Part shown: piece by piece, positions 621 through 29,497 of the stretch
How the letters are laid out: the number at the start of each line of letters is the position of its first letter
How positions within the stretch are numbered: position 1 is the first letter of the stretch
NCBI RefSeq assembly: GCF_000315625.1
Contig: NW_005434534.1
Location: forward strand, 1 to 32,964
DNA: 32,964 nt
Direction of reading: 5' to 3'
DNA from: Guillardia theta CCMP2712
Lineage: Eukaryota; Protista; Cryptophyta
Notes under the pieces: generated by a model
Seen by the model: only the letters and a program-made list of their open reading frames with translations
The model's database searches: none
What the model was told of the DNA's origin: nothing
Made by a program: the position numbers and the translations under genes

Positions 621-1489
621 TCAATGTGTAGCGAAACATTTCTTGACGAGCAAACTGACAAACAGAGAAGACATGACGGCAGTGATCAGGTTGTGAACTC
701 CCAACCTGACCCCGAGGTTGCACCTCTGCACGTTACACTGGCACTCTGCGCACCTCGCAAGTCAGGAGAAACTTCACATCCTCCCATCTTCCACGTCACC
801 TGTCACTGTCTTGGTGCACCTGTGACAACCATCACTTCCCCCTCCTCTGCTAACACCCTCCCTTCACCATCCGCTCAAGCAAGTCGTAGAGGTCTTCTCG
901 AACGCTGTGTTGGTACAGTAGTTGGCTGAGTAGAACGCGAGCGCGTCGCTCCCTGTATCCGTCACCGGCCATGGCACGCAGCTCTTGTACTGGAACTCCG
1001 ACTGGAACCCATCCTTTGCCGTGATCACTTCGTGCTGTTTCCTGGCAATAAGTCAGGACATCACAACTGCGCGGCCTCGAGAGGCACCAGCAGTAGAGGC
1101 ATTGGCTCAACACTCCCTGACACTTGGCACTCGCTGCACTCCCTTGTCACTTCGGAGCTCGCAAGAATCAGTCGCAGGCTTGCTCGCCTGGATATCCTCC
1201 GATGTCAAGGGAAGGGTGTCGCCAGTACTCAGCTTCTGTGCAGGTGAAGCATTCTGCATCGTCGCTGATGATCACAGCAGAGCGAGCATAAGCAAACACC
1301 ACCTATCGGCTGTCGGCATTTATTTCTTCCTGCGCATGGAGGCGCCCAGGCTGAACTCGTTGCTGCAGCATTGTTAGGGGACAAGCAATCGAGGCTCTTT
1401 TTCGGCAGACCAGTGGTGGTTTGTCCCCAAGCTTCCAACAAAAGGCAAATAGTAATGACGAGGAGAAAAATGAAGCTTCTACTCAACAT
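621..1489 (-). CDS. secreted, probably GPI-anchored Cys-rich protein with Ly6/uPAR (three-finger, Quiver-like) cysteine pattern
   Basis: Hand-spliced exons 1489-1303 (optional in-frame 48-nt intron inside), 1253-1188, 1133-1088, 1041-868, 819-800 and 745-621; all phases are compatible. Product: signal peptide MLSRSFIFLLVITICLLLEAWG...IECFTC...KC...QCLYCWK...YKSC...YC...TC...WC...ECQCNVQRCN followed by hydrophobic tail LGVRLGVHNLITAVMSSLFVSLLVKK. Gene model is strong; the family call is by pattern only. Confidence 0.7.
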
Positions 1490-1804
1490 TTTCACTTGAA
1501 AGACCTGATGTCCCGCCATTAGCTCGGGTGTTTCATCCTGGTCCTAATGCCACTTCTTTATCTTCTTCCGAGTCAATGCTCTTCTCCTATCCCGGCTTCT
1601 GCATCCCCGCCATCCTTACCTTGTCGTCAATGTGCCATTTCGCCGCTGCAGCCAAAAAACATAAAAAAAAGTCAATCATCTGAGGCGGACACTGACGGGA
1701 GTCGCTGCTGTGGGTGCGGCCCGGGCCCGGTCAGTGAAGGTGCCGGGGCCGGTCGGTCCGGTGGCGTTTCACTGAGAATCTTGAGGCGGACTCAGAGAAG
1801 CTGT

Positions 1805-2115
1805 AAAAGAGGGGTAGGGTGGTATGAGCTACCGGTACTTCGGCATGAGTAATGAAGGGGTACTAGAGAGGGGCCGTACTTGAGGAAGGGTGGGGGCAGG
1901 GTAAGATGATCCATGTCAAGGGGTAGGGGTAGTGGGTGATGGGTCACTGGGAATTGTGGACCATGGGGGGTAGGGTATAAGGATTTGTTACCAGGGTGGG
2001 GGTGAAATTACTGTAATACGATGGGGTAGTACTTCAGAAACCTGGGGTAGTAACATCAAAAATGGGGGGAAGCATTTTAAGGGTAGGGTACATGACAATT
2101 AGTGGGGTCATTTAT
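1805..2115. promoter_or_regulatory. cluster of GGGGTA/GGGGTC motifs in a divergent intergenic region
   Basis: Repeated ggggtag/ggggtac/ggggtca at ~1811, 1857, 1920, 1967, 2023, 2044 and 2104, between the starts of 621-1489(-) and 2547(+). Function inferred. Confidence 0.35.
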
Positions 2116-2546
2116 TTTGTCGGAGTGATGGGAACAACATGGCGTAGGAAAGGGAGGGAACGATGGTTGGGGGGGGCAGGAGCTGAGGTGAAGGGAGGGA
2201 AGAAAGGGGGGAGAGGGAGAGGGAGAGGAGACAAGAGAGAAGAACATCGCAGTGTGTGGTGAAAAGGATAGCTGTGAGACAAAGGAGGAAAGTTTCTGTG
2301 CTGACTCAGTATCCCTGTCAGAAATTGGTCTTTCCAGTCCATTAGCTCAGCTCAAGTACACCGACGAAGCAACCAGGACTTTATCTCAGTCAGATCTCTC
2401 TTGACAATCAAGGTACAATAAAAATCCACTGGATCCCAGGGCTCTGCTGACCCAATACCCCTCCCATCGCTTCAGTTGGTATACAGCACCTTGCAAGGAG
2501 GAAAGCGTTTCTTTGGTCCGCGTCTGGTGCGATCCAACAGGTTGAC

Positions 2547-16393: not shown

Positions 16394-18059
16394 ATGGCCT
16401 GGATCTTCGGTGGAAGAAGACAAAGTGACGGGCAGAGAAATCAGCCGAACCCTCCTGTTGCCGTCAACAACACGGCCAACTATCGCCCTCCTCCTCCTCC
16501 ATACCGGCCCCCCGTCGCTCAACCTCAACCCCCTGCCATCCAGGCGGCGCATGCGCATGTAGCGGTGAATCAGCCGGACGCTGCGCGGGCAGCCAACGCG
16601 ATGAACCGACCAGGGGGCACGACGAGGAGGCTCAAGTATCCTGCGCTCGACCGGATCGAGATCGTGCCGGCTGCCTCCTCCTCCCAGCGCCGCCAAGAGC
16701 TGCAGGTGCTGGTGGAGCAGCTCAAGGTGATCGATGCGGACGTGCTGGTATTGTCCTCGGCAGCCCCCAAGCTTGACCTGAGGATCGAGAGCTCCATCCT
16801 GTCCGAGGCAGAGGAGAGTGTGATCAACAGGTCCAGAGACCTCGACGCGGAGCGAGAGAGGCAGCAGAAGCTGGTGAAGGAGCACCTGCGACGAGTTGAA
16901 GAGCAGCGGAGGGAGGAGCAGCACAAGGAGGAGCAGAGGAGGGAGCAAGCGAAGAGAGAACAGGAGCAGCTTGAACGAGACAACATTCAACCTACATTTC
17001 CCGTCAAAGAATCTCTGAGTGATGTATTCAACTCCTCCTCCCACCTTCTTCCTTCCTCTGCTTCTCACCTAATCCGCCAAACCTTTCTTCCTTCATTTCG
17101 GCTTTCCCTCCCGTTATTGGCATGTCATGGTGACAAAATTGGCAGAGGGAGGAAGATCAAGTCCCCATCTTTGACTTCACTATTGCTGCAGGCCCACAGG
17201 TATGCTCTCCCTCTCCTCCTCCTCCTCCACCACCACCACCACCACCTCCTCCTCCTCCTCCTCCTCTCTTCAATTTTTGTCACCTTTCTTCTGTTCCGTC
17301 CTCTTCTTAGCCTTGGTTTTCAAGCTTTGCCTCCCGCGCCCTGACGTTGAAGCAGGCGACTTTACCGGCAGACTCAGTAGCCCTACAGACTTCACACGCG
17401 TCGCAAGCTGCTGAGGGAGTGCGGGGAGGCGGCACTCCTCCTCCTCCTCCTCCTCCTCCTCTTGTACCACCTGAGGTGAGGAGCCGCGAGCGGCGGGTTT
17501 AAAGCTCCTCCATGTTGCTGACACGAGCAACTGCAGAGCACAACGATCGTCGCGTCAGATGCAGGAGGAGGAGGGGAAGAGCCTCTGAGCCCCGTGCGGT
17601 CGTGGCAGGGCTCCCCTGCCATGAAGGCGATGTTCATCCAAGAGCTTACCGACCGCGGTCACGCTGTGAAGGGTGAGGAGGAGGAGGAAGGGGGGAGGGA
17701 GGAGGGAGGAGAGGGAGGGTCTAGAGGAGGAAGAGGATCTAACAGAGGATGTAGATGTTGAACTTGTGCTGGAGATGCTGGGGGGGGACGTGGAGAAGGC
17801 GCAAAAGGCGCTGGAGGAGATGAACAAGCTGAGGCATGTGAAGCATGAGGAATGCAGGGGAAGTGACGAGATGATGGCTGCAGGGAGGAAGGATGGGAAC
17901 GCGATCGATCCGAATGGGCTGCTTGGCTTCTCAACAAGTTCCTGTAGATGTTTAAATCTCATCCACCTGCTCGTCCTCCTCGTCATCATCTTCATCGTTA
18001 TTATTGATCTCCATCGTCCTACTCCCTCCCCCTCTCTTGCTCTAGTCATCTGTGCGTGA
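16394..18059 (+). CDS. Pro-rich/coiled-coil protein with C-terminal UBA/CUE-like domain (3' end uncertain)
   Basis: Exon 1 MAWIFGGRR... has a Pro-rich stretch and an E/R/Q coiled coil. Spliced later exons give MFIQELTDRGHAVK|EDVDVELVLEMLGGDVEKAQKALEEM, resembling the UBA/CUE three-helix pattern (L..xG....L...GGDV..A...L). Confidence 0.55.
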
Positions 18060-18639
18060 AGCTGCCCTGGCGCTTGCGGAAGGTTGATCTCTCCTCGTCC
18101 GGTCCGATTCGAAGCTGAGCCGTCAGGTCCTGCATCCAGTTGGGAAGGAAGCTGCAGAGGAAGAGAAGGAGAAGTCAGAGTCAAGAGGAGGCAAGGAAGA
18201 GAAAGTTGAGACAGAGATTCTCAGGAGGAGGAGGAGGAGGAGGAGCAGCAGCAGCAGCAGACCTTATCGCTGACGTCTCCAACCCTTCTCGTCCTGCCTC
18301 CCCCTCCTCTGAAATTGTTTCCTCATGCTTCTTTGCTTCCGAGCGTGTTTGCCCTCCTTCCGGGAAGATGAAGTTTTTCTACCGGCCCAGTCAGCCTCCT
18401 CCCCCTCCCCCTCCTCCCCCTCCCCCTCCCCCTCCCCCTCCTCTCAAGTATCATGCGGCACCTTGGTTGTTGTGTCCACAGGCTCCTCCCCTTCTGGGTG
18501 CTGACTGCGAGCCTCCTCCTTCCAGCTCCCCTGCCCTCATGCTCACTGACACATCGCAGCTGCTCCTTGCTCACCTTCCCCTTGACGCCGAAGATGTTCA
18601 GGAGAAGATCCATCTGGAGCCAGCACAAGTGAGCCGGGG

Positions 18640-18671
<32 letters not shown>

Positions 18672-21600
18672 CAAGGAAGGACAGAAGGAGAAGGGGCAGA
18701 AGGAAGAGGGGCAGAAGGAGGAGGAGGAGGTAGGAGCAGGAGCAGTAGAGGCAGGAGGAGCGGGGCAATCGGGAGTAGGAGCAGGAGAAGGGGCAGGATG
18801 GAGGAGGAGGGACCTTGGCATGAAGATCTTTCACGTCCTCTGCATGCTCGTTCACTCGATCAATTCTCTGCTGCAGCTCGTCGAAGCGGCTGGTGAGCTC
18901 TTTCACTTGACTTCTCAACTGCTCCACCTCTGAACCGCCAGGGCGAAGCTCCTCCCCTCCCCTCCTCTCCTCCTCCTCCTCCTCCTCCTCCTCCTCCTCC
19001 TCCTTGACAGGCGATGGCTCTGACGAAGCTGCATTAGGATGGTCTTCCTCCTCCTCGAGGGACTGGCTGGTTTGGTGATCAGCAGCCAGTCCGTTGGCTG
19101 TGAGCTTGTCTGGGAAACGAGAGTCCGGCTTCCTCCTGACCTTGAGCAGGTCCGGATGATTCATCAGCATCATCAGCTGCAACTCTTGTCAACGTTTGCC
19201 CCTCCCTCCCTCCCTCTCCCTCTCCTCCCTCCCTCCCTCCCTCCATAACTCCCTCCCCTCTGGCTCGCTTCCTCTCACCTTCAAGCCCAGCATGGAAGCG
19301 AAACCTGCGCCGTGATGATTCTCTGCGTCCTTCAGGATGCCAGCAGCGAGCTGCCGCTGTAAAGAATGTGCTAAGCAAGCAGATGAAGAGAGAAAGTAGC
19401 GAGAAGAAGAGATAAGGGAACAGCACAGGACAGCACAGGGAGGTAGGGATAGAAGGCTTACCTGTGCAAAAAGGAGGAGCTGGTGCCATATCATATGATG
19501 GAAATCCTCATACCTGAAGTCAAGAAGCTACTCAGCTCTCGCCTAGTCCCTTGTGCTCTCACCCAAGTTCGCCCTCGTCGTTGCTGAATTTCCCGTGCGG
19601 GCCCATGCAGATCAAGTTGAAGTCATCGGGAGACAAGTAGATCTGCAATATCGTAACGACGACATCTGAAACATGCAGAAAGAGCAAAAGCAGAGCAGCA
19701 GCGGTGGTGGTGGCGGCAGCGGCAGCGGCAGCGGCAGCGGCAGCGGCAGCGGCAGCGGCAGCGGCAGCGGCAGCGGCAGCGGCAGCGGCAGCGGCAGCGG
19801 CAGCGGCAGCGGCAGCGGCAGCGGCAGCGGCAGCGGCAGCGGCAGCGGCAGCGGCAGCGGCAGCGGCAGCGGCAGCGGCAGCAGCAGCGGCAGCAGCAGC
19901 GGCAGAAGCAGCAGCGGCAGCAGCAGCGGCAGAAGCAGCAGCGGCAGCAGCGGCGGCAGAAGCAGCAGCGGCAGCAGCAGCAGCAGCGGTATTCGTCAAA
20001 ACCTCTTTAGCGGTGTGATGGAGCCACAACTTTCTGAGCCCTTCGCTCATCTCCTGGAAGGAGATGCGCCCGTTGCCGTCTATGTCAAGTTTCTGCTTCC
20101 TCCCTCAGTCGTCCTCATGCTCGACCCCTCTTATATCCTTTTCCTCCCCCCATCCTCTTCCCCTCTGTCATCCTTCTCACCTCGTAGATGGAGTGGATCC
20201 TAGCGTGCAGATCCTGCACAGACTTGAAGCTCGCGAGCTCTCGCAGAAGAGGGTCGAGAGGTCCATCCTTGCTCATCTTGAGTTGCTGCATTCAAGTCAT
20301 GTTCCCCCTCCCTTCTTCCCTCGTCCCTGGTGCTTCCTCTGCTCCTCTTACTCATTTCCTTCTTCACATTCCCTCCTTCCCTTCTTCGCCTTCCTCCTCT
20401 CCTCCTGCTCCTCTCCTCTCCTTCACTGCAATTCCTTCTCCTCCTGCTCCTCTCCTCTCCTTCTCTGCATTTCCTTCTCCTTTTACACTGATGTCACTCA
20501 CCCGTGCGATTTCAACGTCCTGCTTCTCCTTCTTCATTTGCTCTTGCGTATTCACAAACTGTTACAAGATCAGCAAACCGTGATGAGAAGCAGAGATCGC
20601 CTTCTCACCTCATCGAGCAGAACAGCAACGACGATATTCAACATGACGATATTGGTGATCAGGAAGTAAGAGATAAAGAAGAAGTTGATCTTTCAAGCAA
20701 GGTCAGCGGCCACGGGTGGAGAACCAAGAAGGTGACAAACCCCGAAGTCATGGGACAGATGCCCTGTGTTCATGGGGCGAACAACGTCTGTCACCCAGCC
20801 ATCGCCTGTTGAGATTTGAAACATCTTCCTCCCGGTGTCACTCGCAACCACATCGACAGCCACGTCATACCGTGAAGAGAGCGAGCGAGAACGACCCGAA
20901 AAGCTCCTTGTCAGAATCCCCGAAGATGATCACCGCCATCACCTGCATGCATCGCTCAACACTCGTCGCCCTCCACCGCCACGCTCCTCCTTGCCCCTCC
21001 TCCTCCTCTCCCGCTCCCTCGCCCGGTACCGAGAAGAGCGAGGACACGAGGAGGAGCACGCCGAACGCGTTGGCCACAGGGATGATGGCGGAGAGAAGCG
21101 ACTGAATGATGACGCGGAGGGACTGGAGGCGCTTGAAGAGACGGACGACCTGTAAAGCAGCAGGTCAATCCGACAAGCCCAACGCGAGTGAGAGAAGGGA
21201 ATGACGGAGAAGGGAGAAGGGAGGGGGCAGAGGACGTAGGACGGATGAGGGAGGGAGGAGGGAGAGGGGGGGGGGGGCGGGGGGAGGAGGAGGGGAGGGA
21301 GGGGAGAGGGGGGAGGAGGGAGGAGATACAGAGGAAGCAGAGAAAAGGAGGAAATGAAGAGAACCCGGAAGGTCCTGACAAGACGCAGCAAACTGACTCC
21401 CGGCAGGTTCTCGATGCCAAGAGAGATGAGAGAGATCATGACGACGGTGAAGTCAAAGACCTGAGAACGTGGTAGCTGAGCTATGGCAGACAAGACCATG
21501 ACATCAGATGAAAGCTTACATTCCATGAGTCAGTGATGAACTCCTTGAACCAGTGAGCCGTCATGTTGAGAAGGAGCTCACAGGTGAAGATGATGAGAAA

Positions 21601-22386
21601 AAAGAGCTCGAAAGCATCAAAGATGTGAGCAGCATAGCTTCCGTTCTCCGGAAGGATCTCAAAGTTGATGATGTTGATAATGAAGTTGCAGAAGATGAGA
21701 AAAGCGACGAAGAATTGAAAGAAAGGGATGTCATATAGAACTTTCGAGTAAACTTTCGCCAAAGTGAAGAAGGAGGAGTTGATACGATTCTGTCTCTCAA
21801 TCTCCTCCTTTCGCAGCCTCTCAATCTGCTCAATCCATAGCTCACATTCCTCTCGTTCGCTTGCTCGCAGAGTGTAGGCCCTCCCACTATTGAACCCATC
21901 GTGCACGGTCTGGATCTCAAAGATCCTCTCGGAAACTCGAGGCGCGCGCTCTTCCTCCGGCACCTTCTCCTGTTCCATCTCGCGGATGCTGCTGATCTGA
22001 TGCAACTTCAAGCCTCTGTTGTCGTAGAAGAGCGCGTCCAGCTCTTGCCGCTGCACGCTCGTGATCTCGTGTAAGGGGATCATGTCGGTGATGTCGGACT
22101 TGCTGCTGCCAGCAAAGAAGACATGTTGTGCCGTCAGCACAACATACCTGGTGTTCCACGTCATGTCGATGGTTTGTTTGTCCAGATTCGCTTCGAGCAC
22201 ACGATCTCTCTTTGGGGGGAGTTTGCCCCATGTAGGCTTCCATTGTCTCCTCTTGAGATCCTTGGTCGCAAGCTCTCTCAGCGACTCGAGAGAGAACAAT
22301 GTAGCATCTCCTTCCATTTCCTCCTCATCGTCACCAACCGTTGATTCCTCCTTTGCTCGTCGATTGATCAACATCACGGTTGCCAT
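18046..22386 (-). CDS. single-domain (6TM) voltage-gated Ca2+/Na+-type channel with N-terminal PH domain and C-terminal EF-hand + coiled coil (paralogue 1)
   Basis: PH: WNTRYVVLT...DMIPLHEITSV...IFEIQT...GRAYTLRASEREECELWIEQI. S1-S3: FQFFVAFLIFCNFII...FTCELLL...DSWN|VFDFTVV. S4: LLRLVRTFR|VVRLFKRL. Pore: LFGSFSLALFT|MFQISTGDGWVTDVVRPM (TGDGW 20795-20809). S6: FFFISYFLITNIVMLNIVVAVLLDE. EF loop DIDGNGRISFQE (20051-20086). Distal 3' exons less certain. Confidence 0.9.
19695..19990. repeat. (GCGGCA)n / (GCA)n compound microsatellite inside an intron of channel paralogue 1
   Basis: Direct reading; lies between the EF-hand exon and the IYLSPDDFNL exon. Confidence 0.9.
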
Positions 22387-22762
22387 CTCTCAACAAGCTC
22401 CGAGCAAGGTGGATGTAAGAGGTCGCAACCACCTTGCGAGGCTGAGCTGATAATGTCGATACTGAAAAGCGTCAACAGTGTTCTCCAGTTCTCTTTGGCA
22501 ACGAGACGGGTCTCATTCAATCATCAACAAGAACTGAACTCCGGATTATCCCTGAAAACACGATTAGAGAAAATCGTGGGGTAATACAGTCAGATGCAGA
22601 GTTTACATGTAACAACAAACAATCTGTGGAGGAGGGGGGGGCACAACGTGTGTCTCATGTCAGGATTTAAGATGAGTTGGATTCAGCTGATTTCAGCACA
22701 AGAAGATCGCCTAGCTGATCATGTGCTAACGGTGGGGCATGAGATTTCCACGGAGCTTGAAG

Positions 22763-22862
22763 GAGAAGCGGAAGAGAAGCGGAAGAGAAGCGGAAGAGAA
22801 GCCATGAACGAGGAGAAGCGGAAGAGAAGCGGAAGAGAAGCGGAAGAGAAGCCATGAACGAG
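22763..22862. repeat. two copies of a ~50-bp unit built from an 11-mer (GAGAAGCGGAA)x3 plus GAGAAGCCATGAACGAG
   Basis: Direct reading; upstream of channel paralogue 1. Confidence 0.85.
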
Positions 22863-22964
22863 GCAGAGGCGGGGAGGAGAAGGAAAGCGCTTGGTGGCAT
22901 GCTCTATCGTGCCTGCATTCATTTCCTTCTCTCAACCAGCAGCACCGAGGCGTGTCTGAATAGA

Positions 22965-23420
22965 CATGGTGGGGTCATGGGAGGGGTGGGGTGTGAAGGC
23001 GGGTCATTATAAACTTATGACTGGGGTGGGGTACTAAGATGATGGGGTATACGAATACCTGTGTCTGGGGGTCACATGAAAGAAGGGGTACTTTGATTGA
23101 GGTGGAGGTGGTCAGAAGGTCAATGGAACAGGTACAGGTGTGGGGTAGGGTGATTCCAAGGGGTAGGTACGGAAACAGGCCTCAGAGTACTGAAAATGGA
23201 ACGGAGCAGCCGTATCTAAAATGTGAAAAGCATTTTCAAAACTTCAGGGAAATATCCTGATACGTTGAATCCCTCATCAAAGATTTGAATATTAAATTTT
23301 GAAAAACTATTGCCCTATGGAAATTTTGAGACCCGACCAGTACCCCCTTAGGTTCAACCACCCCTAGGTTCGCATACCCACCCCTCGACCACCTCTGGCT
23401 TCAAGTACCCACCCCCCTCA
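22965..23420. promoter_or_regulatory. GGGGTA cluster followed by TACCCC cluster in a divergent intergenic region
   Basis: G-strand motifs at ~22972, 23023, 23044, 23068, 23086, 23142 and 23160; an AT-rich core; C-strand motifs at ~23341, 23359, 23376 and 23406. Confidence 0.35.
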
Positions 23421-23533
23421 GCCTCCATGTGGTCATTCCTCCTTTTTACTTGATGACAAAGTGTTAGCCGCATATGATGGGTGACCATAATCACATCAAT
23501 TCGGTTTAGATCTGAGCGGTTTAGTTACACCGG

Positions 23534-25688
23534 ATGCGACCATGGTTGATGCTGTTGACGATGGTGGTGGCGATGCAGTGCGAGGAGAGGAGGAAGGGAG
23601 AGAGGAAGCGCCTGCTGCAGACAGACAACAAGCTCGCCCATGACAAGCTTGCCTACAACCTCACAGACTGCCCTTGCGGTAGAGCCCTTGGCGCCTATGG
23701 CGAAGCTCTTCCGGACCTCAAAGTCCTCCTGTCGTCCCTCCTCGCTGATGGGGATCATGTCGTCGTCGTGGGTGAGCCTCCTCCTCGTTGTCGTATCCTC
23801 TGGACTCACATGCTTCAGGCATTCCATGCCCCGATGTCGTTCTCCATGCCTCCAAGGCTGTTGGTCTGAAGGGTCGGGTGATGGTAGTCGACGCCAGCCC
23901 GGACAGGCTACGCAAGTCGCTGCAGCTGAATGGCAACTGGAGGAACGTGCATGTGCTGAGGACTTGTGTCGTGATGCCGCAGGAGCAGAAGTTTGAGAAT
24001 GTCCTTCATCCCTCTCACGCCGACCCGTGCTGATTGAATTGAGACAGGTGTCGGGACGAGCGCCTCCGTGTTTTGCTGGCTACGTTGGTCATGCTTGCGG
24101 AGAGAATCACCTGCCCACACCGCTCGATGCTCTGCTGCCAAGCTACGAGGCAGAAACATCGACGACGCCTGCCCTCTTGCTTCTCTCCCTGTCTCCCCGA
24201 GAGCTGCTGGGAGCGCATGCAGGGTTGCGGGGGATGCTACAAGTCGTTTCGTTTTCGCTTGTTTTCCATTGCGACTATGACGCTCAGGCTGTGGTGGTCG
24301 AGCCGATGAGCGCGGCAGTGATACAGCGGGTGTTGACGTCGTATGAGGAGAGAGGAGGGTGTGTCTTCTTTCATGTGGGCAGACATTCCGCCAGTCCCTC
24401 CGGCCTCGAGGCAGACGAGTTCTACTACCTCCCTCCTCCTGTCCATGTGCTCGCTGTGCCGTCACAGTCTCGGTGGTGCCTGCAGTCTGACATCTTCCAG
24501 CTGTCGCAGAGCTCATTAAAAGGAGCTGCAGCAGGGTGTCTCCTCCGCATCCCTTCCTCTACGCCGGCGTCAGACCTTGGTATCGTTCTCAAGCGCGTGT
24601 TTGTTCGCTGCGTACCGGAGGTTGCAAGGTTTGGCACCAACCCCAGGATGTTCTTCAGGCGCATCTCCTTCCAGCTTCCTCTTCCTGCTCGGTCTAACTT
24701 GGGTTCTCCTGTCCCTTTCGCCTCCCGCTGGACAGTCGGGGAGCTGCTGGAGAAGATTCGGGTGAATCAGTTCCCTCCAGACTGCAGCTCTGCTCGCCTC
24801 CTTCTCTTCCGGTATGTTAACGCGGAGCTCTCGGGGCATGGCTCCATGTTCGGCCACCTCAGCGTCGCGCTCAACGCTGCGATCATCACGAGGAGGACGC
24901 TGGTGGTGGATGAGAGCGCCGCATGGCCCTTCTCCGACGGATGTAAGAGCAGCGAGTGCGCCTCGGGCTTCATGTCGACCTACTTCCTTCCTCTCTCCTC
25001 TTGCCGGGCTCCTTCCAGGCAGGAGGCTCATAACCTTCCTCTCCTCTCAGAGGACTCGTCTGCTCAGCGCGTGGTGCTCGTGCTCGATGACTCGGAACTC
25101 CCTCGGTACCGGACGAGACTCCCGGCGTTGCTGCAGCCCGAGCAAGCAGAGCTCGCGATCCTCGAGTGGTATGCAGCTCTCACCGCCTTCCTCCTCCGCC
25201 CCAGCAACCGGCTGGAGAGAATGATGCGGGAGGAACAGGAATCGATGAAAATCCCTGCTCTCTTCCTGGGCCTTCACATCCGACGTGGACACAAGTGGGT
25301 CGAGACTTCATCGCAGCCTCTGGGGGAGTATCTTCGCTTCGCTTCCATGCTGGCTGACAGGACGAGCGTGCGAGATGTGCTGGTGTGCACGGAGGACGAG
25401 GAAGTGATTGAGGAGCTTGAGAACGTCAAGACTGACTTGCGTTTCCACTACACCAACAGCAGCAGGCCAGGCTACCGAATCTCCATCCCGCATGCCATCT
25501 CTCTAGGCATCCTTAACGCTTCTTCAGAGAACCGCGTGTCGCTTGTCAACCTCCTCCTCCTCGCAAGGAGCGCGGCGTTCGTGGGCACGTTTTCGAGCGG
25601 GTACAGCAAGCGAGTCTTCGAGCTGATCGCAGCCCAGCAGCAGGCGCTTCCTCTCTTCGTCTCCTTGGATCACGTCTGGAGTCCGTGA
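23534..25688 (+). CDS. secretory-pathway GT23 (FUT8/NodZ-like alpha-1,6-fucosyltransferase) with N-terminal degenerate FkbM-like methyltransferase domain
   Basis: GT23 blocks: GHGSMFGHL...RRTLVVD, YFLPLSSC, WYAALTAFLLRP, LGLHIRRGHKWVE, VLVCTEDEEVIEEL, LLLLARSAAFVGTFSSGYSKRVFEL. The N-terminus has a signal (MRPWLMLLTMVVAMQC) and LLADGDHVVVV|...SKAVGLKGRVMVVDASPDRLRKSLQLNGNWRNVHV. Confidence 0.8.
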
Positions 25689-25743
25689 AAGAGCTAGGGG
25701 CTACAAGGACTCCTACCACCTCTCCTCAGGGCTGCCTCCTAGC

Positions 25744-28700
25744 CTAGGGGCTCGGGTTTCGTTCCTGGTGGTCGGGGAGGTTGGCGGGGCGGTTGGACTT
25801 GAGGATGGCGGAGGAGGTGCTGAGAGCCTGCGCGAGCTGAAAGCACTGCTCCCTCGGCGTCGTCTGGTTGGACCCGCTCACAAGCACCAAGTCGCTCTGC
25901 TCAAGGTTGAGAGTCGCCACGGCTCTCGAGATCTCCTGCTGAGCGTCCTGCTGGGAGATCTTGCGGATATTCTCGATGGCCTTCTTGAGCTGCTGGAACT
26001 TGTTGATCTGCTCGTTCCTCCGCTGGCCTCTCGGAGGTTCGCTCCTCCTCCTCGCTTGAACTTTTGAATTCCCTTGCCTCGGCTCCTCCGTCCTCTCCCT
26101 CCTCCCCTTGTCTCGAGCCGTCTCTTCCTGCTGCGGTTTCTTCTTCTCGGTTTCAAACTGCTTCTCATAGAGCATGTTCATCTTCTGCTTGTTCATCTTC
26201 TTCTCGCTCCTTCCTCCCCCATGCCCATTGCCCTTTTCCGCGTCCTCCCCGCGCGCTGACCCTTCGCGCACATTCCGGCTGACCTGCTGGGTGAGGGATT
26301 TGAGCATCTTAGAGAGGGTTGCGATCCTCTCGTTGATTCTCGCCACGTCCTCTTCAAGCTCTTCGGGGACTACCTCCTCCTCCTGCATGCTCTCGAACTC
26401 GAGGAAGAGCAGCTTCATCGTCAGGAACATGCTTCTCTGTACGTCGTCGCCCTGCCATGCTCGTGTCAGCCATGCAAGAGGAGAACATCTCTTCTTGCCT
26501 CCCCCATGGAGTTGAGAGTCTCTCGCTGATTGTAGCATTGAAGCTCTTTGACCATGATCACAGCGAACTGCTCCCTGTCGATCTCACCATCCTGCCCCCA
26601 CGTCACTGTAGAGAGCAACGCCTACGCTAATCCCCTCCTCCTCCTCCTCCTCCTCCTCCTCCTCCTCCTCTCCCTCCCCTTGTCGCCTTTCCCCCCTCTC
26701 TGTCTCTCTCGTCGGCTTCTCCCTCACCTCGTTGCACAGAACTCCTTCCTGCGTGATGCTGCAAGTGCAGGTCACAAACAGACAAACGACCGTTGAAACT
26801 TACAGCGAGAAGTCGTCCTGTGCCAGCTGGACTCGAGTTGGGAGAGGGAGCAGATCAAACGCCTCGTTCATTGACTCCATCGTCAGGTACCCTGACTTCT
26901 CGATGTCCAACTTCTGCAGGGGCCCATCTGAGCCCAGGCTGACATATCAAAGTAGCGACGCACCTGGAAGAGCTCGTCGATGCGATGGAGCAGATCTTCT
27001 TTGTCGTTGAACTTTGACAAGGACTCGATCACGGCGTCCAGTGACCCCGTCGCTCGCGCTGCCTGTCGCTTCCTCTGCAGCTCCTCGTCCGACTTTTCTT
27101 TCTGCAGGTCAGGCATCAGCTCAGTCTCACGTCAGCGCCGCTCGCACAGCTGCTTGCTTCTCTGCCGTGATGGTCTGAATCAGCTCGTCGAGGAGAACAG
27201 CAACGACGACGTTGACCAGGATGACGCTCGTCTACAGAATCCGGTAAGCAAAGCAGCACTTGTATTCGAGCATGGTGCACACCACGAGGACGTAGGAGGA
27301 GAAGAAGAGGGCGACGCCTCGATCAAAGCCTCCTTTCTCTGCCATGTAAGTCGGCCTAGCGACGTAGGACGCCCATGAGTCTCCCTACGGTCTGTGAGCG
27401 GAAGGAGGAGCGGGAAGGAAGCAGCTCACAGTAGCGATCTGAAACATGGTGAAGACAGAAGCGCTCATGCTCCCGAAGAATTCTTTCTTAGAAGTCCTGA
27501 AACAGAGTGACGCCGCGACTAGGCCTGCTTCCCTTCTCACCCGTAGAGGTTGGTTGCGAGGACAGCATAGCAGCAGGTCACCACCATGAGCAGCCCGAGA
27601 GCAGACACGACGGGCCGCATGGCCTTCATCAGACCCCAGAGGATCCTCCTGAACGATCGCAGACGACCGAGAACTCGGAGGATGCGAAGGATGCGAATGG
27701 GCCTCAGCATCTGTGACGAATCTCAGCGACGAGCTTGTTGACCCTCAACCTCACAGTGATCTGAAAGAGATTCGCAAATACTGACAAGACGATCACTAAC
27801 GCGTCCATGGAGTTCCAAACTTAAAACGTTGATGTCAAAGCAAGGAAAATCAAATGCGGATACAAATCTCACTGTGTATCACGAATTTTCGCCTCCAATC
27901 GTTGAAGTGAGCAGCAATTAGGATGAAAAATTCAAACATGAAAAAGAGACTGCAAGCAATGTTCACAGCTCTCAAGATCCCTGCGCTTATGAGTCGTGTG
28001 GTTTTACTCTTTGACGAGCTCGACCTGAAATTGTCTTCTGCTTCGTATAAATCCAAAATGTAGGCCAACAGAATGACAGTAGAGCACACATAGATATAAA
28101 TCTTGTTCTTATAGAGTTTGAGCGAGTTGATTTGCAACCATCGGGTCGAACTTCCCGCGATGTCTTGTCGTTCAACATCACTCTTATGCCTTTTAATTGC
28201 GGCCTTGTATGTTTTGGTCAGTGTACGAAACCAGGTCTCATATTCATCCTCGTCATTTGCTTGAAAGATGTAAGTCCTGCCATCCAACAGTATCACCGCA
28301 GGAATCGTTGTTCACAATGTCACCTTCCGTTGTTTATTCCCATCTCATCAGTTTGAATGACGAAAGTCAAGTGGGTTCTCTCTGACGCGTTTGATCCTCT
28401 TCGCTTCGATTTTCGCACTGATCGTCGCTTGTTGTTGTCAGGACCTTTCGTGATGTTCTCCAGGTCTCGGAACCGACCGACGCTGACAATCTCATGTAGT
28501 GGGATTTTGTCCGTGACCAAGTGCTGCAAGTCAGGGTTCGCAAAGTACAAGTCTGTACTGGTGAGAACAGCATACTTGGGGTCCCACGAGTTGGAAGAAC
28601 TGCAAACAAGTACGTGAGAGAAAGCAGGCGCAAACAAGTCAGCCGTCTGCTGTCATCAGCAGCTTGTGTGATATGGCACATATGCTTCACCTGCTCGTCT

Positions 28701-28887
28701 TCTTGTCTAGGGTGCCGCTTAAGATTATGTCGTCCGTGGGCATTGACTCGTTCATGAAGCTGCCCTTCATGCTGAAGCTGCCTCTCCGGCTCCATCTTGG
28801 TGCCTGGCTCTGTTGGTCAGACTCCATATCTTCATCCGAGTCGTAAATCAAGTCATCTCGGATTTCTTGGCTTGTGTTTCGATTCAT
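25744..28887 (-). CDS. single-domain (6TM) voltage-gated Ca2+/Na+-type channel with N-terminal PH domain and degenerate EF-hand + coiled coil (paralogue 2)
   Basis: PH: ILSGTLDKKTS..WDPKYAVLTSTDLYF...DKIPLHEIVSV...TFVIQT...NG|RTYIFQANDEDEYETWFRTL. S3: WNSMDALVIVLS. S4: MLRPIRILRILRVLGRL. Pore: FFGSMSASVFTMFQIAT|GDSWASYVARP. S6: LFFSSYVLV|TSVILVNVVVAVLLDE. EF-like loop DIEKSGYLTMES (26872-26907). Start codon tentative. Confidence 0.88.
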
Positions 28888-29315
28888 GTCGGTCTCTGTT
28901 TCGATTTTCGCTGGACCAGCAAAAACAAGCTGGTTTGACTCAGCTAGTGACGTGTCTTCTGCAATTCTAGTGAAGGAAAGCAACTGTTGTGCACTGACGA
29001 GCCTTCAAACTGGCCCGGCAGAGCGACAAAATTCAGTTCGGATCCTCAAACGCTTTGTACCTCAGAAGTTTAAATTTCTTCCGCCCAGCCCTTTTTGTTC
29101 GTCCTGATTCCTTCTGCTATCAAATCGTTGAGGTCCTCAATGACCTTTTTGGCCAATTGCTGCCTGCTATTACAAGTCACTTGTCTGTACTCGTGAGTCA
29201 ACGTCCGTTTGCCAGCCTCTTCCTTCCGACCCCCATGATCAATCGCAGAATTCCAGCGCTCTCGTCCACTCCCTTCATCTCCTTCTTGTTCCTCTCCTCC
29301 TCTCCGTATTGACCT

Positions 29316-29497
29316 CCTTCTCTCTTCTCTCTTCTCTCTTCTTCTCTTCTTCTCTTCTCTCCTCTCTCTTCTCTCTTCTCTCTTCTTCTCTTCTCTCTTC
29401 TCTCTTCTCTCCTCTCTCTTCTCTCTTCTCTCTTCTCTCTTCTCTCTTCTTCTCTGCTCTCTTCTCTCTTCTCTCTTCTTCTCTTCTTCTCTCTTCT

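Follow-up and report, generated by a model that had tools for sequence, protein, structure and literature searches.

Two Guillardia theta genes for predicted single-domain voltage-gated channels with an N-terminal PH domain, members of a large cryptophyte family

The window described here is the stretch C140:1-32964 (32,964 nucleotides) of the 87.1-Mb, 669-contig assembly of the cryptophyte alga Guillardia theta CCMP2712. Two spliced channel genes lie within it, both on the minus strand and 3.4 kb apart (at ~18.6-22.4 kb and 25.7-28.9 kb). Each encodes, in order, a PH domain and one six-transmembrane (6TM) voltage-gated pore domain, followed by an EF-hand pair region and then a heptad coiled coil. 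An earlier note on this DNA had read the same architecture for two same-strand genes at this spacing, and the spliced models reproduce it. The note had also treated the genes as a special pair, which they are not: they are two of an estimated 45-50 paralogues in the genome and kin of the already named EukCatB/NavEh class. The reading favored here, to which a probability of roughly four in five can be attached, is that the products of genes 1 and 2 are subunits of voltage-gated cation channels that have one domain per chain and form tetramers, from a family that has expanded in cryptophytes, is related to EukCatB/NavEh and BacNav, and carries an added PH domain. Architecturally, the PH-fused voltage-gated channel is a novel form within a known channel class; within their large family, genes 1 and 2 are unexceptional.

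The fusion is most directly read in gene 1. A single open reading frame (ORF) of 301 residues (21484-22386, minus strand) carries a PH domain (Pfam, E 9.2e-08, 33.0 bits against a cut-off of 25.1) and, in the same frame, a match to Ion_trans (E 9e-06). Because this one ORF holds both the PH domain and the S1-S2 helices, the link between PH domain and channel requires no splicing, just as had been claimed for this gene. The PH domain occupies residues ~55-203 (21778..22224) by Pfam, AlphaFold, and Foldseek. An AlphaFold model of the ORF, based on a 45-sequence alignment, has a mean predicted local distance difference test (pLDDT) score of 80, with the PH core above 95. In the PH domain of the model, seven strands are followed by a C-terminal helix (178-203), and a low-confidence insert of ~40 residues separates strands 5 and 6. 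When compared with the PDB by Foldseek, the model matches PH domains exclusively (GRK2, SKAP-Hom, TAPP1, ARAP3, and Akt3), with target template modeling (TM) scores of 0.7-0.86. The C-terminal helix of the PH domain is followed by a two-residue break, then by the S0 helix and S1. The exon that encodes the PH domain continues in frame into S0, S1, and S2 (21520..21771, minus strand); the corresponding model helices span residues 206-219, 221-244, and 251-285, with Ion_trans matched at ORF residues 221-290.

In gene 2, the PH domain (residues 49-189; 28183..28743, minus strand) is distributed over three exons, which singly give weak, sub-threshold Pfam PH matches. Once spliced, it scores 112.6 bits (E 3e-34) against a family PH profile made without gene 1, while 500 shuffled versions reach 8.6 bits at most. 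This score supports both the assignment of the PH fold and the two splice junctions internal to the domain. Exon 3 (28276-27873) runs in a single frame from the final strands of the PH domain through its helix to S1-S2. The PH fold, which had been proposed from the letters of the sequence, is borne out in gene 1 by Pfam and the predicted structure and in gene 2 by the family profile.

Downstream of the PH domain, the chains encoded by both genes have one Ion_trans (S1-S6) domain with an arginine-rich S4, as found by Pfam on the exons. In gene 1, S3, S4 (RLVRTFRVVRLFK), and S5 are encoded at 21030..21460 (minus strand) by exons 2 and 3, which are separated by a 215-nt intron; the S4 has the pattern RxxRxxRxxRxxK. 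The gene 2 S4 (RPIRILRILRVLGR) and S5 come from a single exon (27541..27710, minus strand; Ion_trans E 3.2e-08), and here RPIRILRILR gives RxxRxxRxxR. The selectivity filter of gene 1 is TGDGW (in FQISTGDGW; 20795..20809, minus strand), which places an Asp at the high-field-strength site and aligns to the family consensus FTMFQxxTGDxW. That of gene 2 is TGDSW (in FQIATGDSWAS; 27373..27432, minus strand), and its codons are interrupted, as T|GDSW, by a 45-nt intron (27429-27385). Both the charged S4 segments and the Asp filters had been called correctly at the outset. Asp is in fact the norm for the family, in which TGDSW occurs 12 times, TGDGW 7 times, TGDAW 6 times, and TGESW once, the single TGESW relative also retaining the C-terminal half of the PH domain.

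What might the Asp mean for permeation? Genes 1 and 2 have TGDGW and TGDSW in place of TGESW, the Na+-selective filter of the coccolithophore type, in which position 0 is Glu; they therefore do not belong to the Na+-selective EukCatB subtype. The E305D mutant of EhEUKCATB1 (TGESWSE to TGDSWSE) gained permeability to Ca2+ and Ba2+ (bioRxiv 10.1101/2020.04.29.068528). The filter of gene 2 starts with the exact motif of this mutant.

The C-terminal tails carry the remaining parts. Gene 1 encodes a canonical EF-hand loop, DIDGNGRISFQE (20051..20086, minus strand), recognized by Pfam as EF-hand_1 (E 1e-05) on a 30-residue exon. Its heptad coiled coil of ~40 residues (18811..18930, minus strand) was recognized in the translation by a regular, clean 3-4-3-4 hydrophobic spacing that runs from EVEQLRSQV to DLHAKV; Pfam matches of the coiled-coil type are weak. 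In gene 2, an EF-hand-pair-like region (26487..26913, minus strand) aligns column for column with the EF pair of the family, with degenerate loops DIEKSGYLTMES and LCNEDGEIDREQ. The C-terminal tail that follows (25747..26436, minus strand) gave no informative Pfam match; heptad stretches such as VARINERIATLSKMLKSLTQQV can be read from its translation. Across the family, the C-terminal module aligns with lobes of calmodulin and CDPK along ~72 residues (E ~1e-08 to 1e-09) and is therefore a true EF-hand pair.

How large is this family, and where is it found? With the 301-residue ORF as the query, a full HMMER scan of 1.84 billion representatives returned 1055 matches with E<=0.001, 265 of them with E<=1e-10; many of the matches cover the PH domain and S1-S2 together. 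There are 59 matches in the G. theta genome, and ~49 of these span the PH C terminus and S1, which suggests about 45-50 paralogues of this design. One of them, L004 on contig C12, encodes the full set of parts in an intronless ORF of 750 codons: PH domain, Ion_trans (E 1.8e-37), EF-hand pair, and coiled coil. Its AlphaFold model is a 6TM channel (pLDDT 79). The identical domain order is found in a Proteomonas sulcata transcript that is marked complete (P0088), and transcripts of Hanusia likewise carry the PH-channel architecture. All family members that come with an organism name are from cryptophytes, namely, Guillardia, Hanusia, Rhodomonas, Proteomonas, and Hemiselmis. The other relatives are environmental contigs whose neighboring genes, seen in the contexts of intron-poor homologues, are eukaryotic, not viral or bacterial. 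A word-index protein search returned four-domain channels alone for the family alignment and metagenome proteins alone for the TGESW-type relative, and look-ups in the ESM Atlas gave no further named kin. The proteins of this family sit in databases under automatic names, e.g., "EF-hand domain-containing protein," and one G. theta paralogue is annotated as GUITHDRAFT_107287. No description of a PH-fused voltage-gated channel was found in the full-text searchable literature, in keeping with the earlier note, which knew of no characterized channel of this class with an N-terminal PH domain.

The neighborhood of the two genes extends past the window. A third PH-fused gene, L002 (ORF 1357-2409, minus strand, of C140:37232-40981), lies on the same strand ~6 kb beyond the window end, so this is a three-gene cluster rather than a pair. 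L002 has its PH domain and S1-S2 in one ORF and is 41% identical to gene 1 across that span. It is the orthologue of Hanusia transcript P0002 and has a complete K...R-x-R motif in the PH domain.

How might a channel of this kind work? The chain begins with an N terminus predicted to be disordered, followed by the PH domain, S0, S1, a voltage sensor whose S4 bears four or five charges, a pore with Asp at the high-field-strength site, the EF-hand pair, and the coiled coil. Depolarization would open a Ca2+-permeable, non-Na+-selective pore, by analogy with E305D EhEUKCATB1. The coiled coil would tetramerize the subunits, as it does in BacNav, and the EF pair would provide Ca2+ feedback in gene 1, though probably not in gene 2. 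Since a near-continuous helix joins the PH domain to S0/S1 in the predicted model, the PH domain must, on that model, be cytosolic and adjoin the inner leaflet. Placed there, under the voltage sensor, it would couple gating to a lipid or protein ligand or else target the channel to a membrane domain. The distance from the Trp of the PH helix to the Gln preceding S1 is 38-41 residues in 40 of 45 relatives. A link of such conserved length, rigid in the model, favors mechanical or allosteric coupling, and thus a role in gating, over a loose tether. As for the ligand, K70, R80, and R169 are kept in most relatives and give a partly basic pocket. The strongest conservation in the PH domain is found in two family-specific motifs, D-x-I-P-L-x-E-I in the turn between strands 4 and 5 and G-x-N-S-G-R-x-Y in the loop between strands 6 and 7; these could face the lipid or be in contact with the channel.

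Several points weigh against parts of this reading. (i) The canonical phosphoinositide motif of strands 1-2, K-Xn-[KR]-X-R, is complete in 3 of 45 aligned relatives and incomplete in both gene 1 (K...W-N-T-R) and gene 2 (K...W-D-P-K); this lowers the odds of high-affinity binding and leaves room for lipid binding of some kind. The integration of lipid or G-protein input suggested in the earlier note is conjectural. (ii) Gene 2 departs from its relatives. Its S1-S2 deviates from the family consensus, its EF loop DIEKSGYLTMES is without the Glu of position 12, and no Pfam EF-hand match was found in its EF region. Ca2+ feedback, proposed originally for both genes, is thus plausible for gene 1, with its canonical loop, but not for gene 2. 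With S1-S2 divergent and the EF loops degenerate, gene 2 may not work as a homotetramer. (iii) RNA reads neither confirm nor contradict the splice junctions: when one RNA run and three others whose type is uncertain were mapped to 23600-29400, two RNA reads fell there. The few contigs obtained there from the uncertain-type runs are unspliced, and those runs resemble DNA. (iv) PH-bearing members of the family are known from sequence and predicted structure alone. (v) Placement of the family within the EukCatB clade is suggested indirectly, by best matches and a published clade listing.

The first of these points leads to the most serious rival, in which the PH domain does not sense lipid to control gating but mediates protein contacts or trafficking. 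It might bind G-beta-gamma, a scaffold, or a partner that directs the channel to the flagella or ejectisomes, and the channel would gate like an ordinary EukCatB or BacNav channel. The absence of the full phosphoinositide motif from most relatives fits this idea, as does the family-specific nature of the most conserved PH residues. The top Foldseek match, moreover, is the G-beta-gamma-binding PH domain of GRK2, although this match may reflect just the long C-terminal helix. However, a free adaptor needs no short, length-conserved helical link to S0/S1, and K70, R80, and R169 still provide a partly basic pocket. On balance, a PH domain serving solely as an interaction module is doubtful.

The second point raises the question of whether gene 2 forms a channel of its own. 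It might modulate other subunits or be silent, or it might be a copy in decay; it would then work solely in heterotetramers with other family members, e.g., gene 1 or L002. Its identity to gene 1 is 27% and to L004 25%, and its off-consensus S1-S2 and degenerate EF loops without a Pfam match would suit such a role; the large number of paralogues makes heteromers plausible. Against this, its 809-codon frame is unbroken over 13 exons, and conservation extends to every S4 arginine, the filter, S6, and the core of the PH domain. One stranded RNA read pair also lies within its last exon, in the expected orientation. A modulatory, silent, or decaying gene 2 is accordingly quite unlikely. The identity of just 27% does indicate that genes 1 and 2 are old paralogues, not a recent pair.

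A third alternative concerns the residues before the PH domain. In NavEh, the N terminus brings about N-type (ball-and-chain) inactivation, and the first dozen residues of the present proteins might act as such a ball, with the PH domain as part of the chain or as a docking site. Gene 1 begins with MATVMLINRRAK (22351-22386, minus strand) and its Hanusia orthologue with MASVILINRRGR; both are hydrophobic and then basic, the pattern described for the N-helix of NavEh (PMC9114117), and AlphaFold predicts residues 13-50 of gene 1 to be disordered. Yet the N terminus of gene 2 is polar and acidic, the basic cluster of gene 1 is shorter than the five arginines of NavEh, and a chain needs no folded domain of 150 residues. 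An inactivation ball is therefore very unlikely as an account of the N-terminal region, and the resemblance of the gene 1 N terminus to that of NavEh serves as a lead only, by analogy. Finally, the notion that a PH gene and a channel gene were wrongly joined, which might be entertained because the junctions in the window have no confirming RNA reads, has a negligible chance and is refuted by ORF continuity: the PH domain and S1-S2 share an uninterrupted ORF in gene 1, in exon 3 of gene 2, and in L002, the whole chain lies in the single ORF of L004, and the same chain recurs in independent transcriptomes of other cryptophytes.

If genes 1 and 2 are, as favored here, subunits of PH-bearing channels, a further speculation presents itself. 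A PH domain rigidly coupled to S0/S1 could act as a coincidence detector for depolarization and a lipid or protein signal at the inner leaflet. The PH pockets, filters, and EF loops of the paralogues differ, and 45-50 such varied subunits, mixing into heterotetramers, could then constitute a combinatorial code of excitability. This proposal is best regarded as tentative and, taken as a whole, unlikely. More broadly, an EukCatB-like channel with a lipid- or protein-binding PH domain on its voltage sensor would be unusual in three respects. The alga has dozens of genes for it, its filter has an Asp of the Ca2+ type, and nature would here provide a voltage-gated channel that senses membrane signals within its own chain. 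It would also bear on how cryptophytes convert photoreceptor currents and mechanical or chemical stimuli into Ca2+ signals.

The single-domain design is not the only one in this genome. At least ten G. theta loci match a four-domain Cav/Nav-type channel over two or three successive repeats, within open frames of 1200-2000 codons (e.g., C32:384982-386874, C55:31826-34282, and C104:206535-208379), and Guillardia is rich in both channel designs. Because the genome also carries so many multi-domain Cav/Nav-like genes, the flagellar or phototactic role that had been offered for the two genes is not specifically implied, and any such role is pure inference. Further variants occur among the environmental relatives. 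P0028, P0035, and P0082 are two-repeat versions with two tandem Ion_trans domains, each with a TGDSW or TFDSW filter. In the gene call for P0059 (1315 residues), the PH-channel-EF chain continues with two parts of a phospholipid-translocating P4-ATPase, its N-terminal and E1-E2 domains, which represents either a gene-call read-through or a fusion to a lipid flippase.

The gene models themselves were built by enumerating frame-compatible GT-AG introns and choosing those that keep the product colinear with its relatives. In the minus-strand ORF listing and its translation, the PH and channel segments sit in short exons, with introns of 44-360 nt. Gene 1 (18601..22386) has at least 13 exons: 22386-21520, 21460-21365, 21149-21030, 20942-20871, 20824-20741, 20689-20609, 20558-20502, 20285-20181, 20092-20003, 19642-19563, 19513-19462, 19356-19279, and 19176 onward. 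Twelve GT-AG introns link the PH/S1-S2 ORF to S3-S6. Its start and first junction agree with transcript P0001 of Hanusia phi (79% identity), in which the junction is read as DSWNVFDF. The 3' end has two candidates, namely, a read-through to the stop ending at 18601 or an intron from 18813 followed by a last exon ending near 18046; for the last intron and exon there are dozens of frame-compatible options, none selectable. Of the extent originally given, 18046-28887, the upper limit is indeed the first ATG of gene 2, whereas 18046 is one possible stop of gene 1. The ninth intron of gene 1 (19643-20002) is 360 nt long, a multiple of three, and free of in-frame stops. It consists mostly of GCN repeats and would, if retained, add ~90 alanines.

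Gene 2 (25744..28887; 809 residues) has 13 exons: 28887-28691, 28599-28324, 28276-27873, 27819-27755, 27710-27541, 27496-27430, 27384-27283, 27231-27131, 27072-26964, 26913-26804, 26758-26728, 26591-26487, and 26436-25744, the last including the stop. An alternative placement, 27147/27102, exists for the eighth intron. The 31-nt micro-exon at 26728-26758 (LITQEGVLCNE) is required for colinearity of the EF pair with relatives. Both gene models, all of whose exons are on the minus strand, align over their full length with cryptophyte transcripts and the intronless L004. The space between them holds a FUT8-like ORF on the plus strand (24027-25688, 553 codons), which matches the N-terminal and catalytic domains of alpha-1,6-fucosyltransferase FUT8 (Pfam E 6e-15) and whose 3' end is convergent with that of gene 2.

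How do these proteins compare with known channels? Matched against PDB sequences, the family profile finds the chains of four-domain Cav and Nav channels repeat by repeat, and its best single-domain match is NavEh, at 244 bits compared with 168 for a NaChBac chimera. Foldseek with the L004 model also places NavEh at the top (29-35% identity), followed by NaChBac, NavMs, and NavAb. NavEh (PDB 7X5V, 8J7F, and 8J7M) is EukCatB1 (EhEUKCATB1) of Emiliania huxleyi, a protein of 542 residues in which a ball helix at the N terminus precedes S1-S6 and an EF-hand-like domain follows them (PMC9114117), and Helliwell et al. assigned cryptophyte channels to the EukCatB clade (PMC6509283). By profile and fold, NavEh is the closest solved channel to genes 1 and 2 and shares their EF-like tail. 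It differs in that it has no PH domain, just the ball helix before S1 (PMC9114117), in its Na+-selective Glu filter TGESWSE where genes 1 and 2 have Asp, and in its large S5-P1 extracellular loop, which is not seen in genes 1 and 2.

The BacNav channels (NaChBac, NavAb, NavMs, and CavAb) resemble genes 1 and 2 in their single domain of the homotetramer type, S4 arginine ladder, C-terminal coiled coil, and frame of pore helix, filter, and Trp, with 22-36% identity in Foldseek alignments. They are prokaryotic, however, lack the PH domain and EF-hand pair, and have a native filter with Glu, LESWAS, whereas genes 1 and 2 are eukaryotic and spliced, with an Asp filter and the added PH and EF domains. 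Diatom EukCatA channels are, like genes 1 and 2, eukaryotic single-domain proteins with a coiled coil, and some have an Asp at position 0 and conduct Na+ and Ca2+. They form a separate clade in the published tree and have no reported PH domain. The Ca2+-selective CatSper channel likewise has single-domain subunits and a T-x-D-x-W Asp filter. In contrast to genes 1 and 2, it assembles only as a heterotetramer, together with many auxiliary subunits, depends weakly on voltage, and has neither a PH domain nor an EF tail, and CatSper chains were not among the best 60 PDB profile matches of the family.

The PH domain of the family, for its part, shares with the classical PH domains of GRK2, SKAP-Hom, TAPP1, ARAP3, and Akt the seven-strand sandwich, the C-terminal helix cap, and the signature Trp. 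It departs from them in mostly lacking a complete phosphoinositide-binding motif, in carrying an insert of 19-56 residues between strands 5 and 6, and in being fused directly to a voltage sensor.

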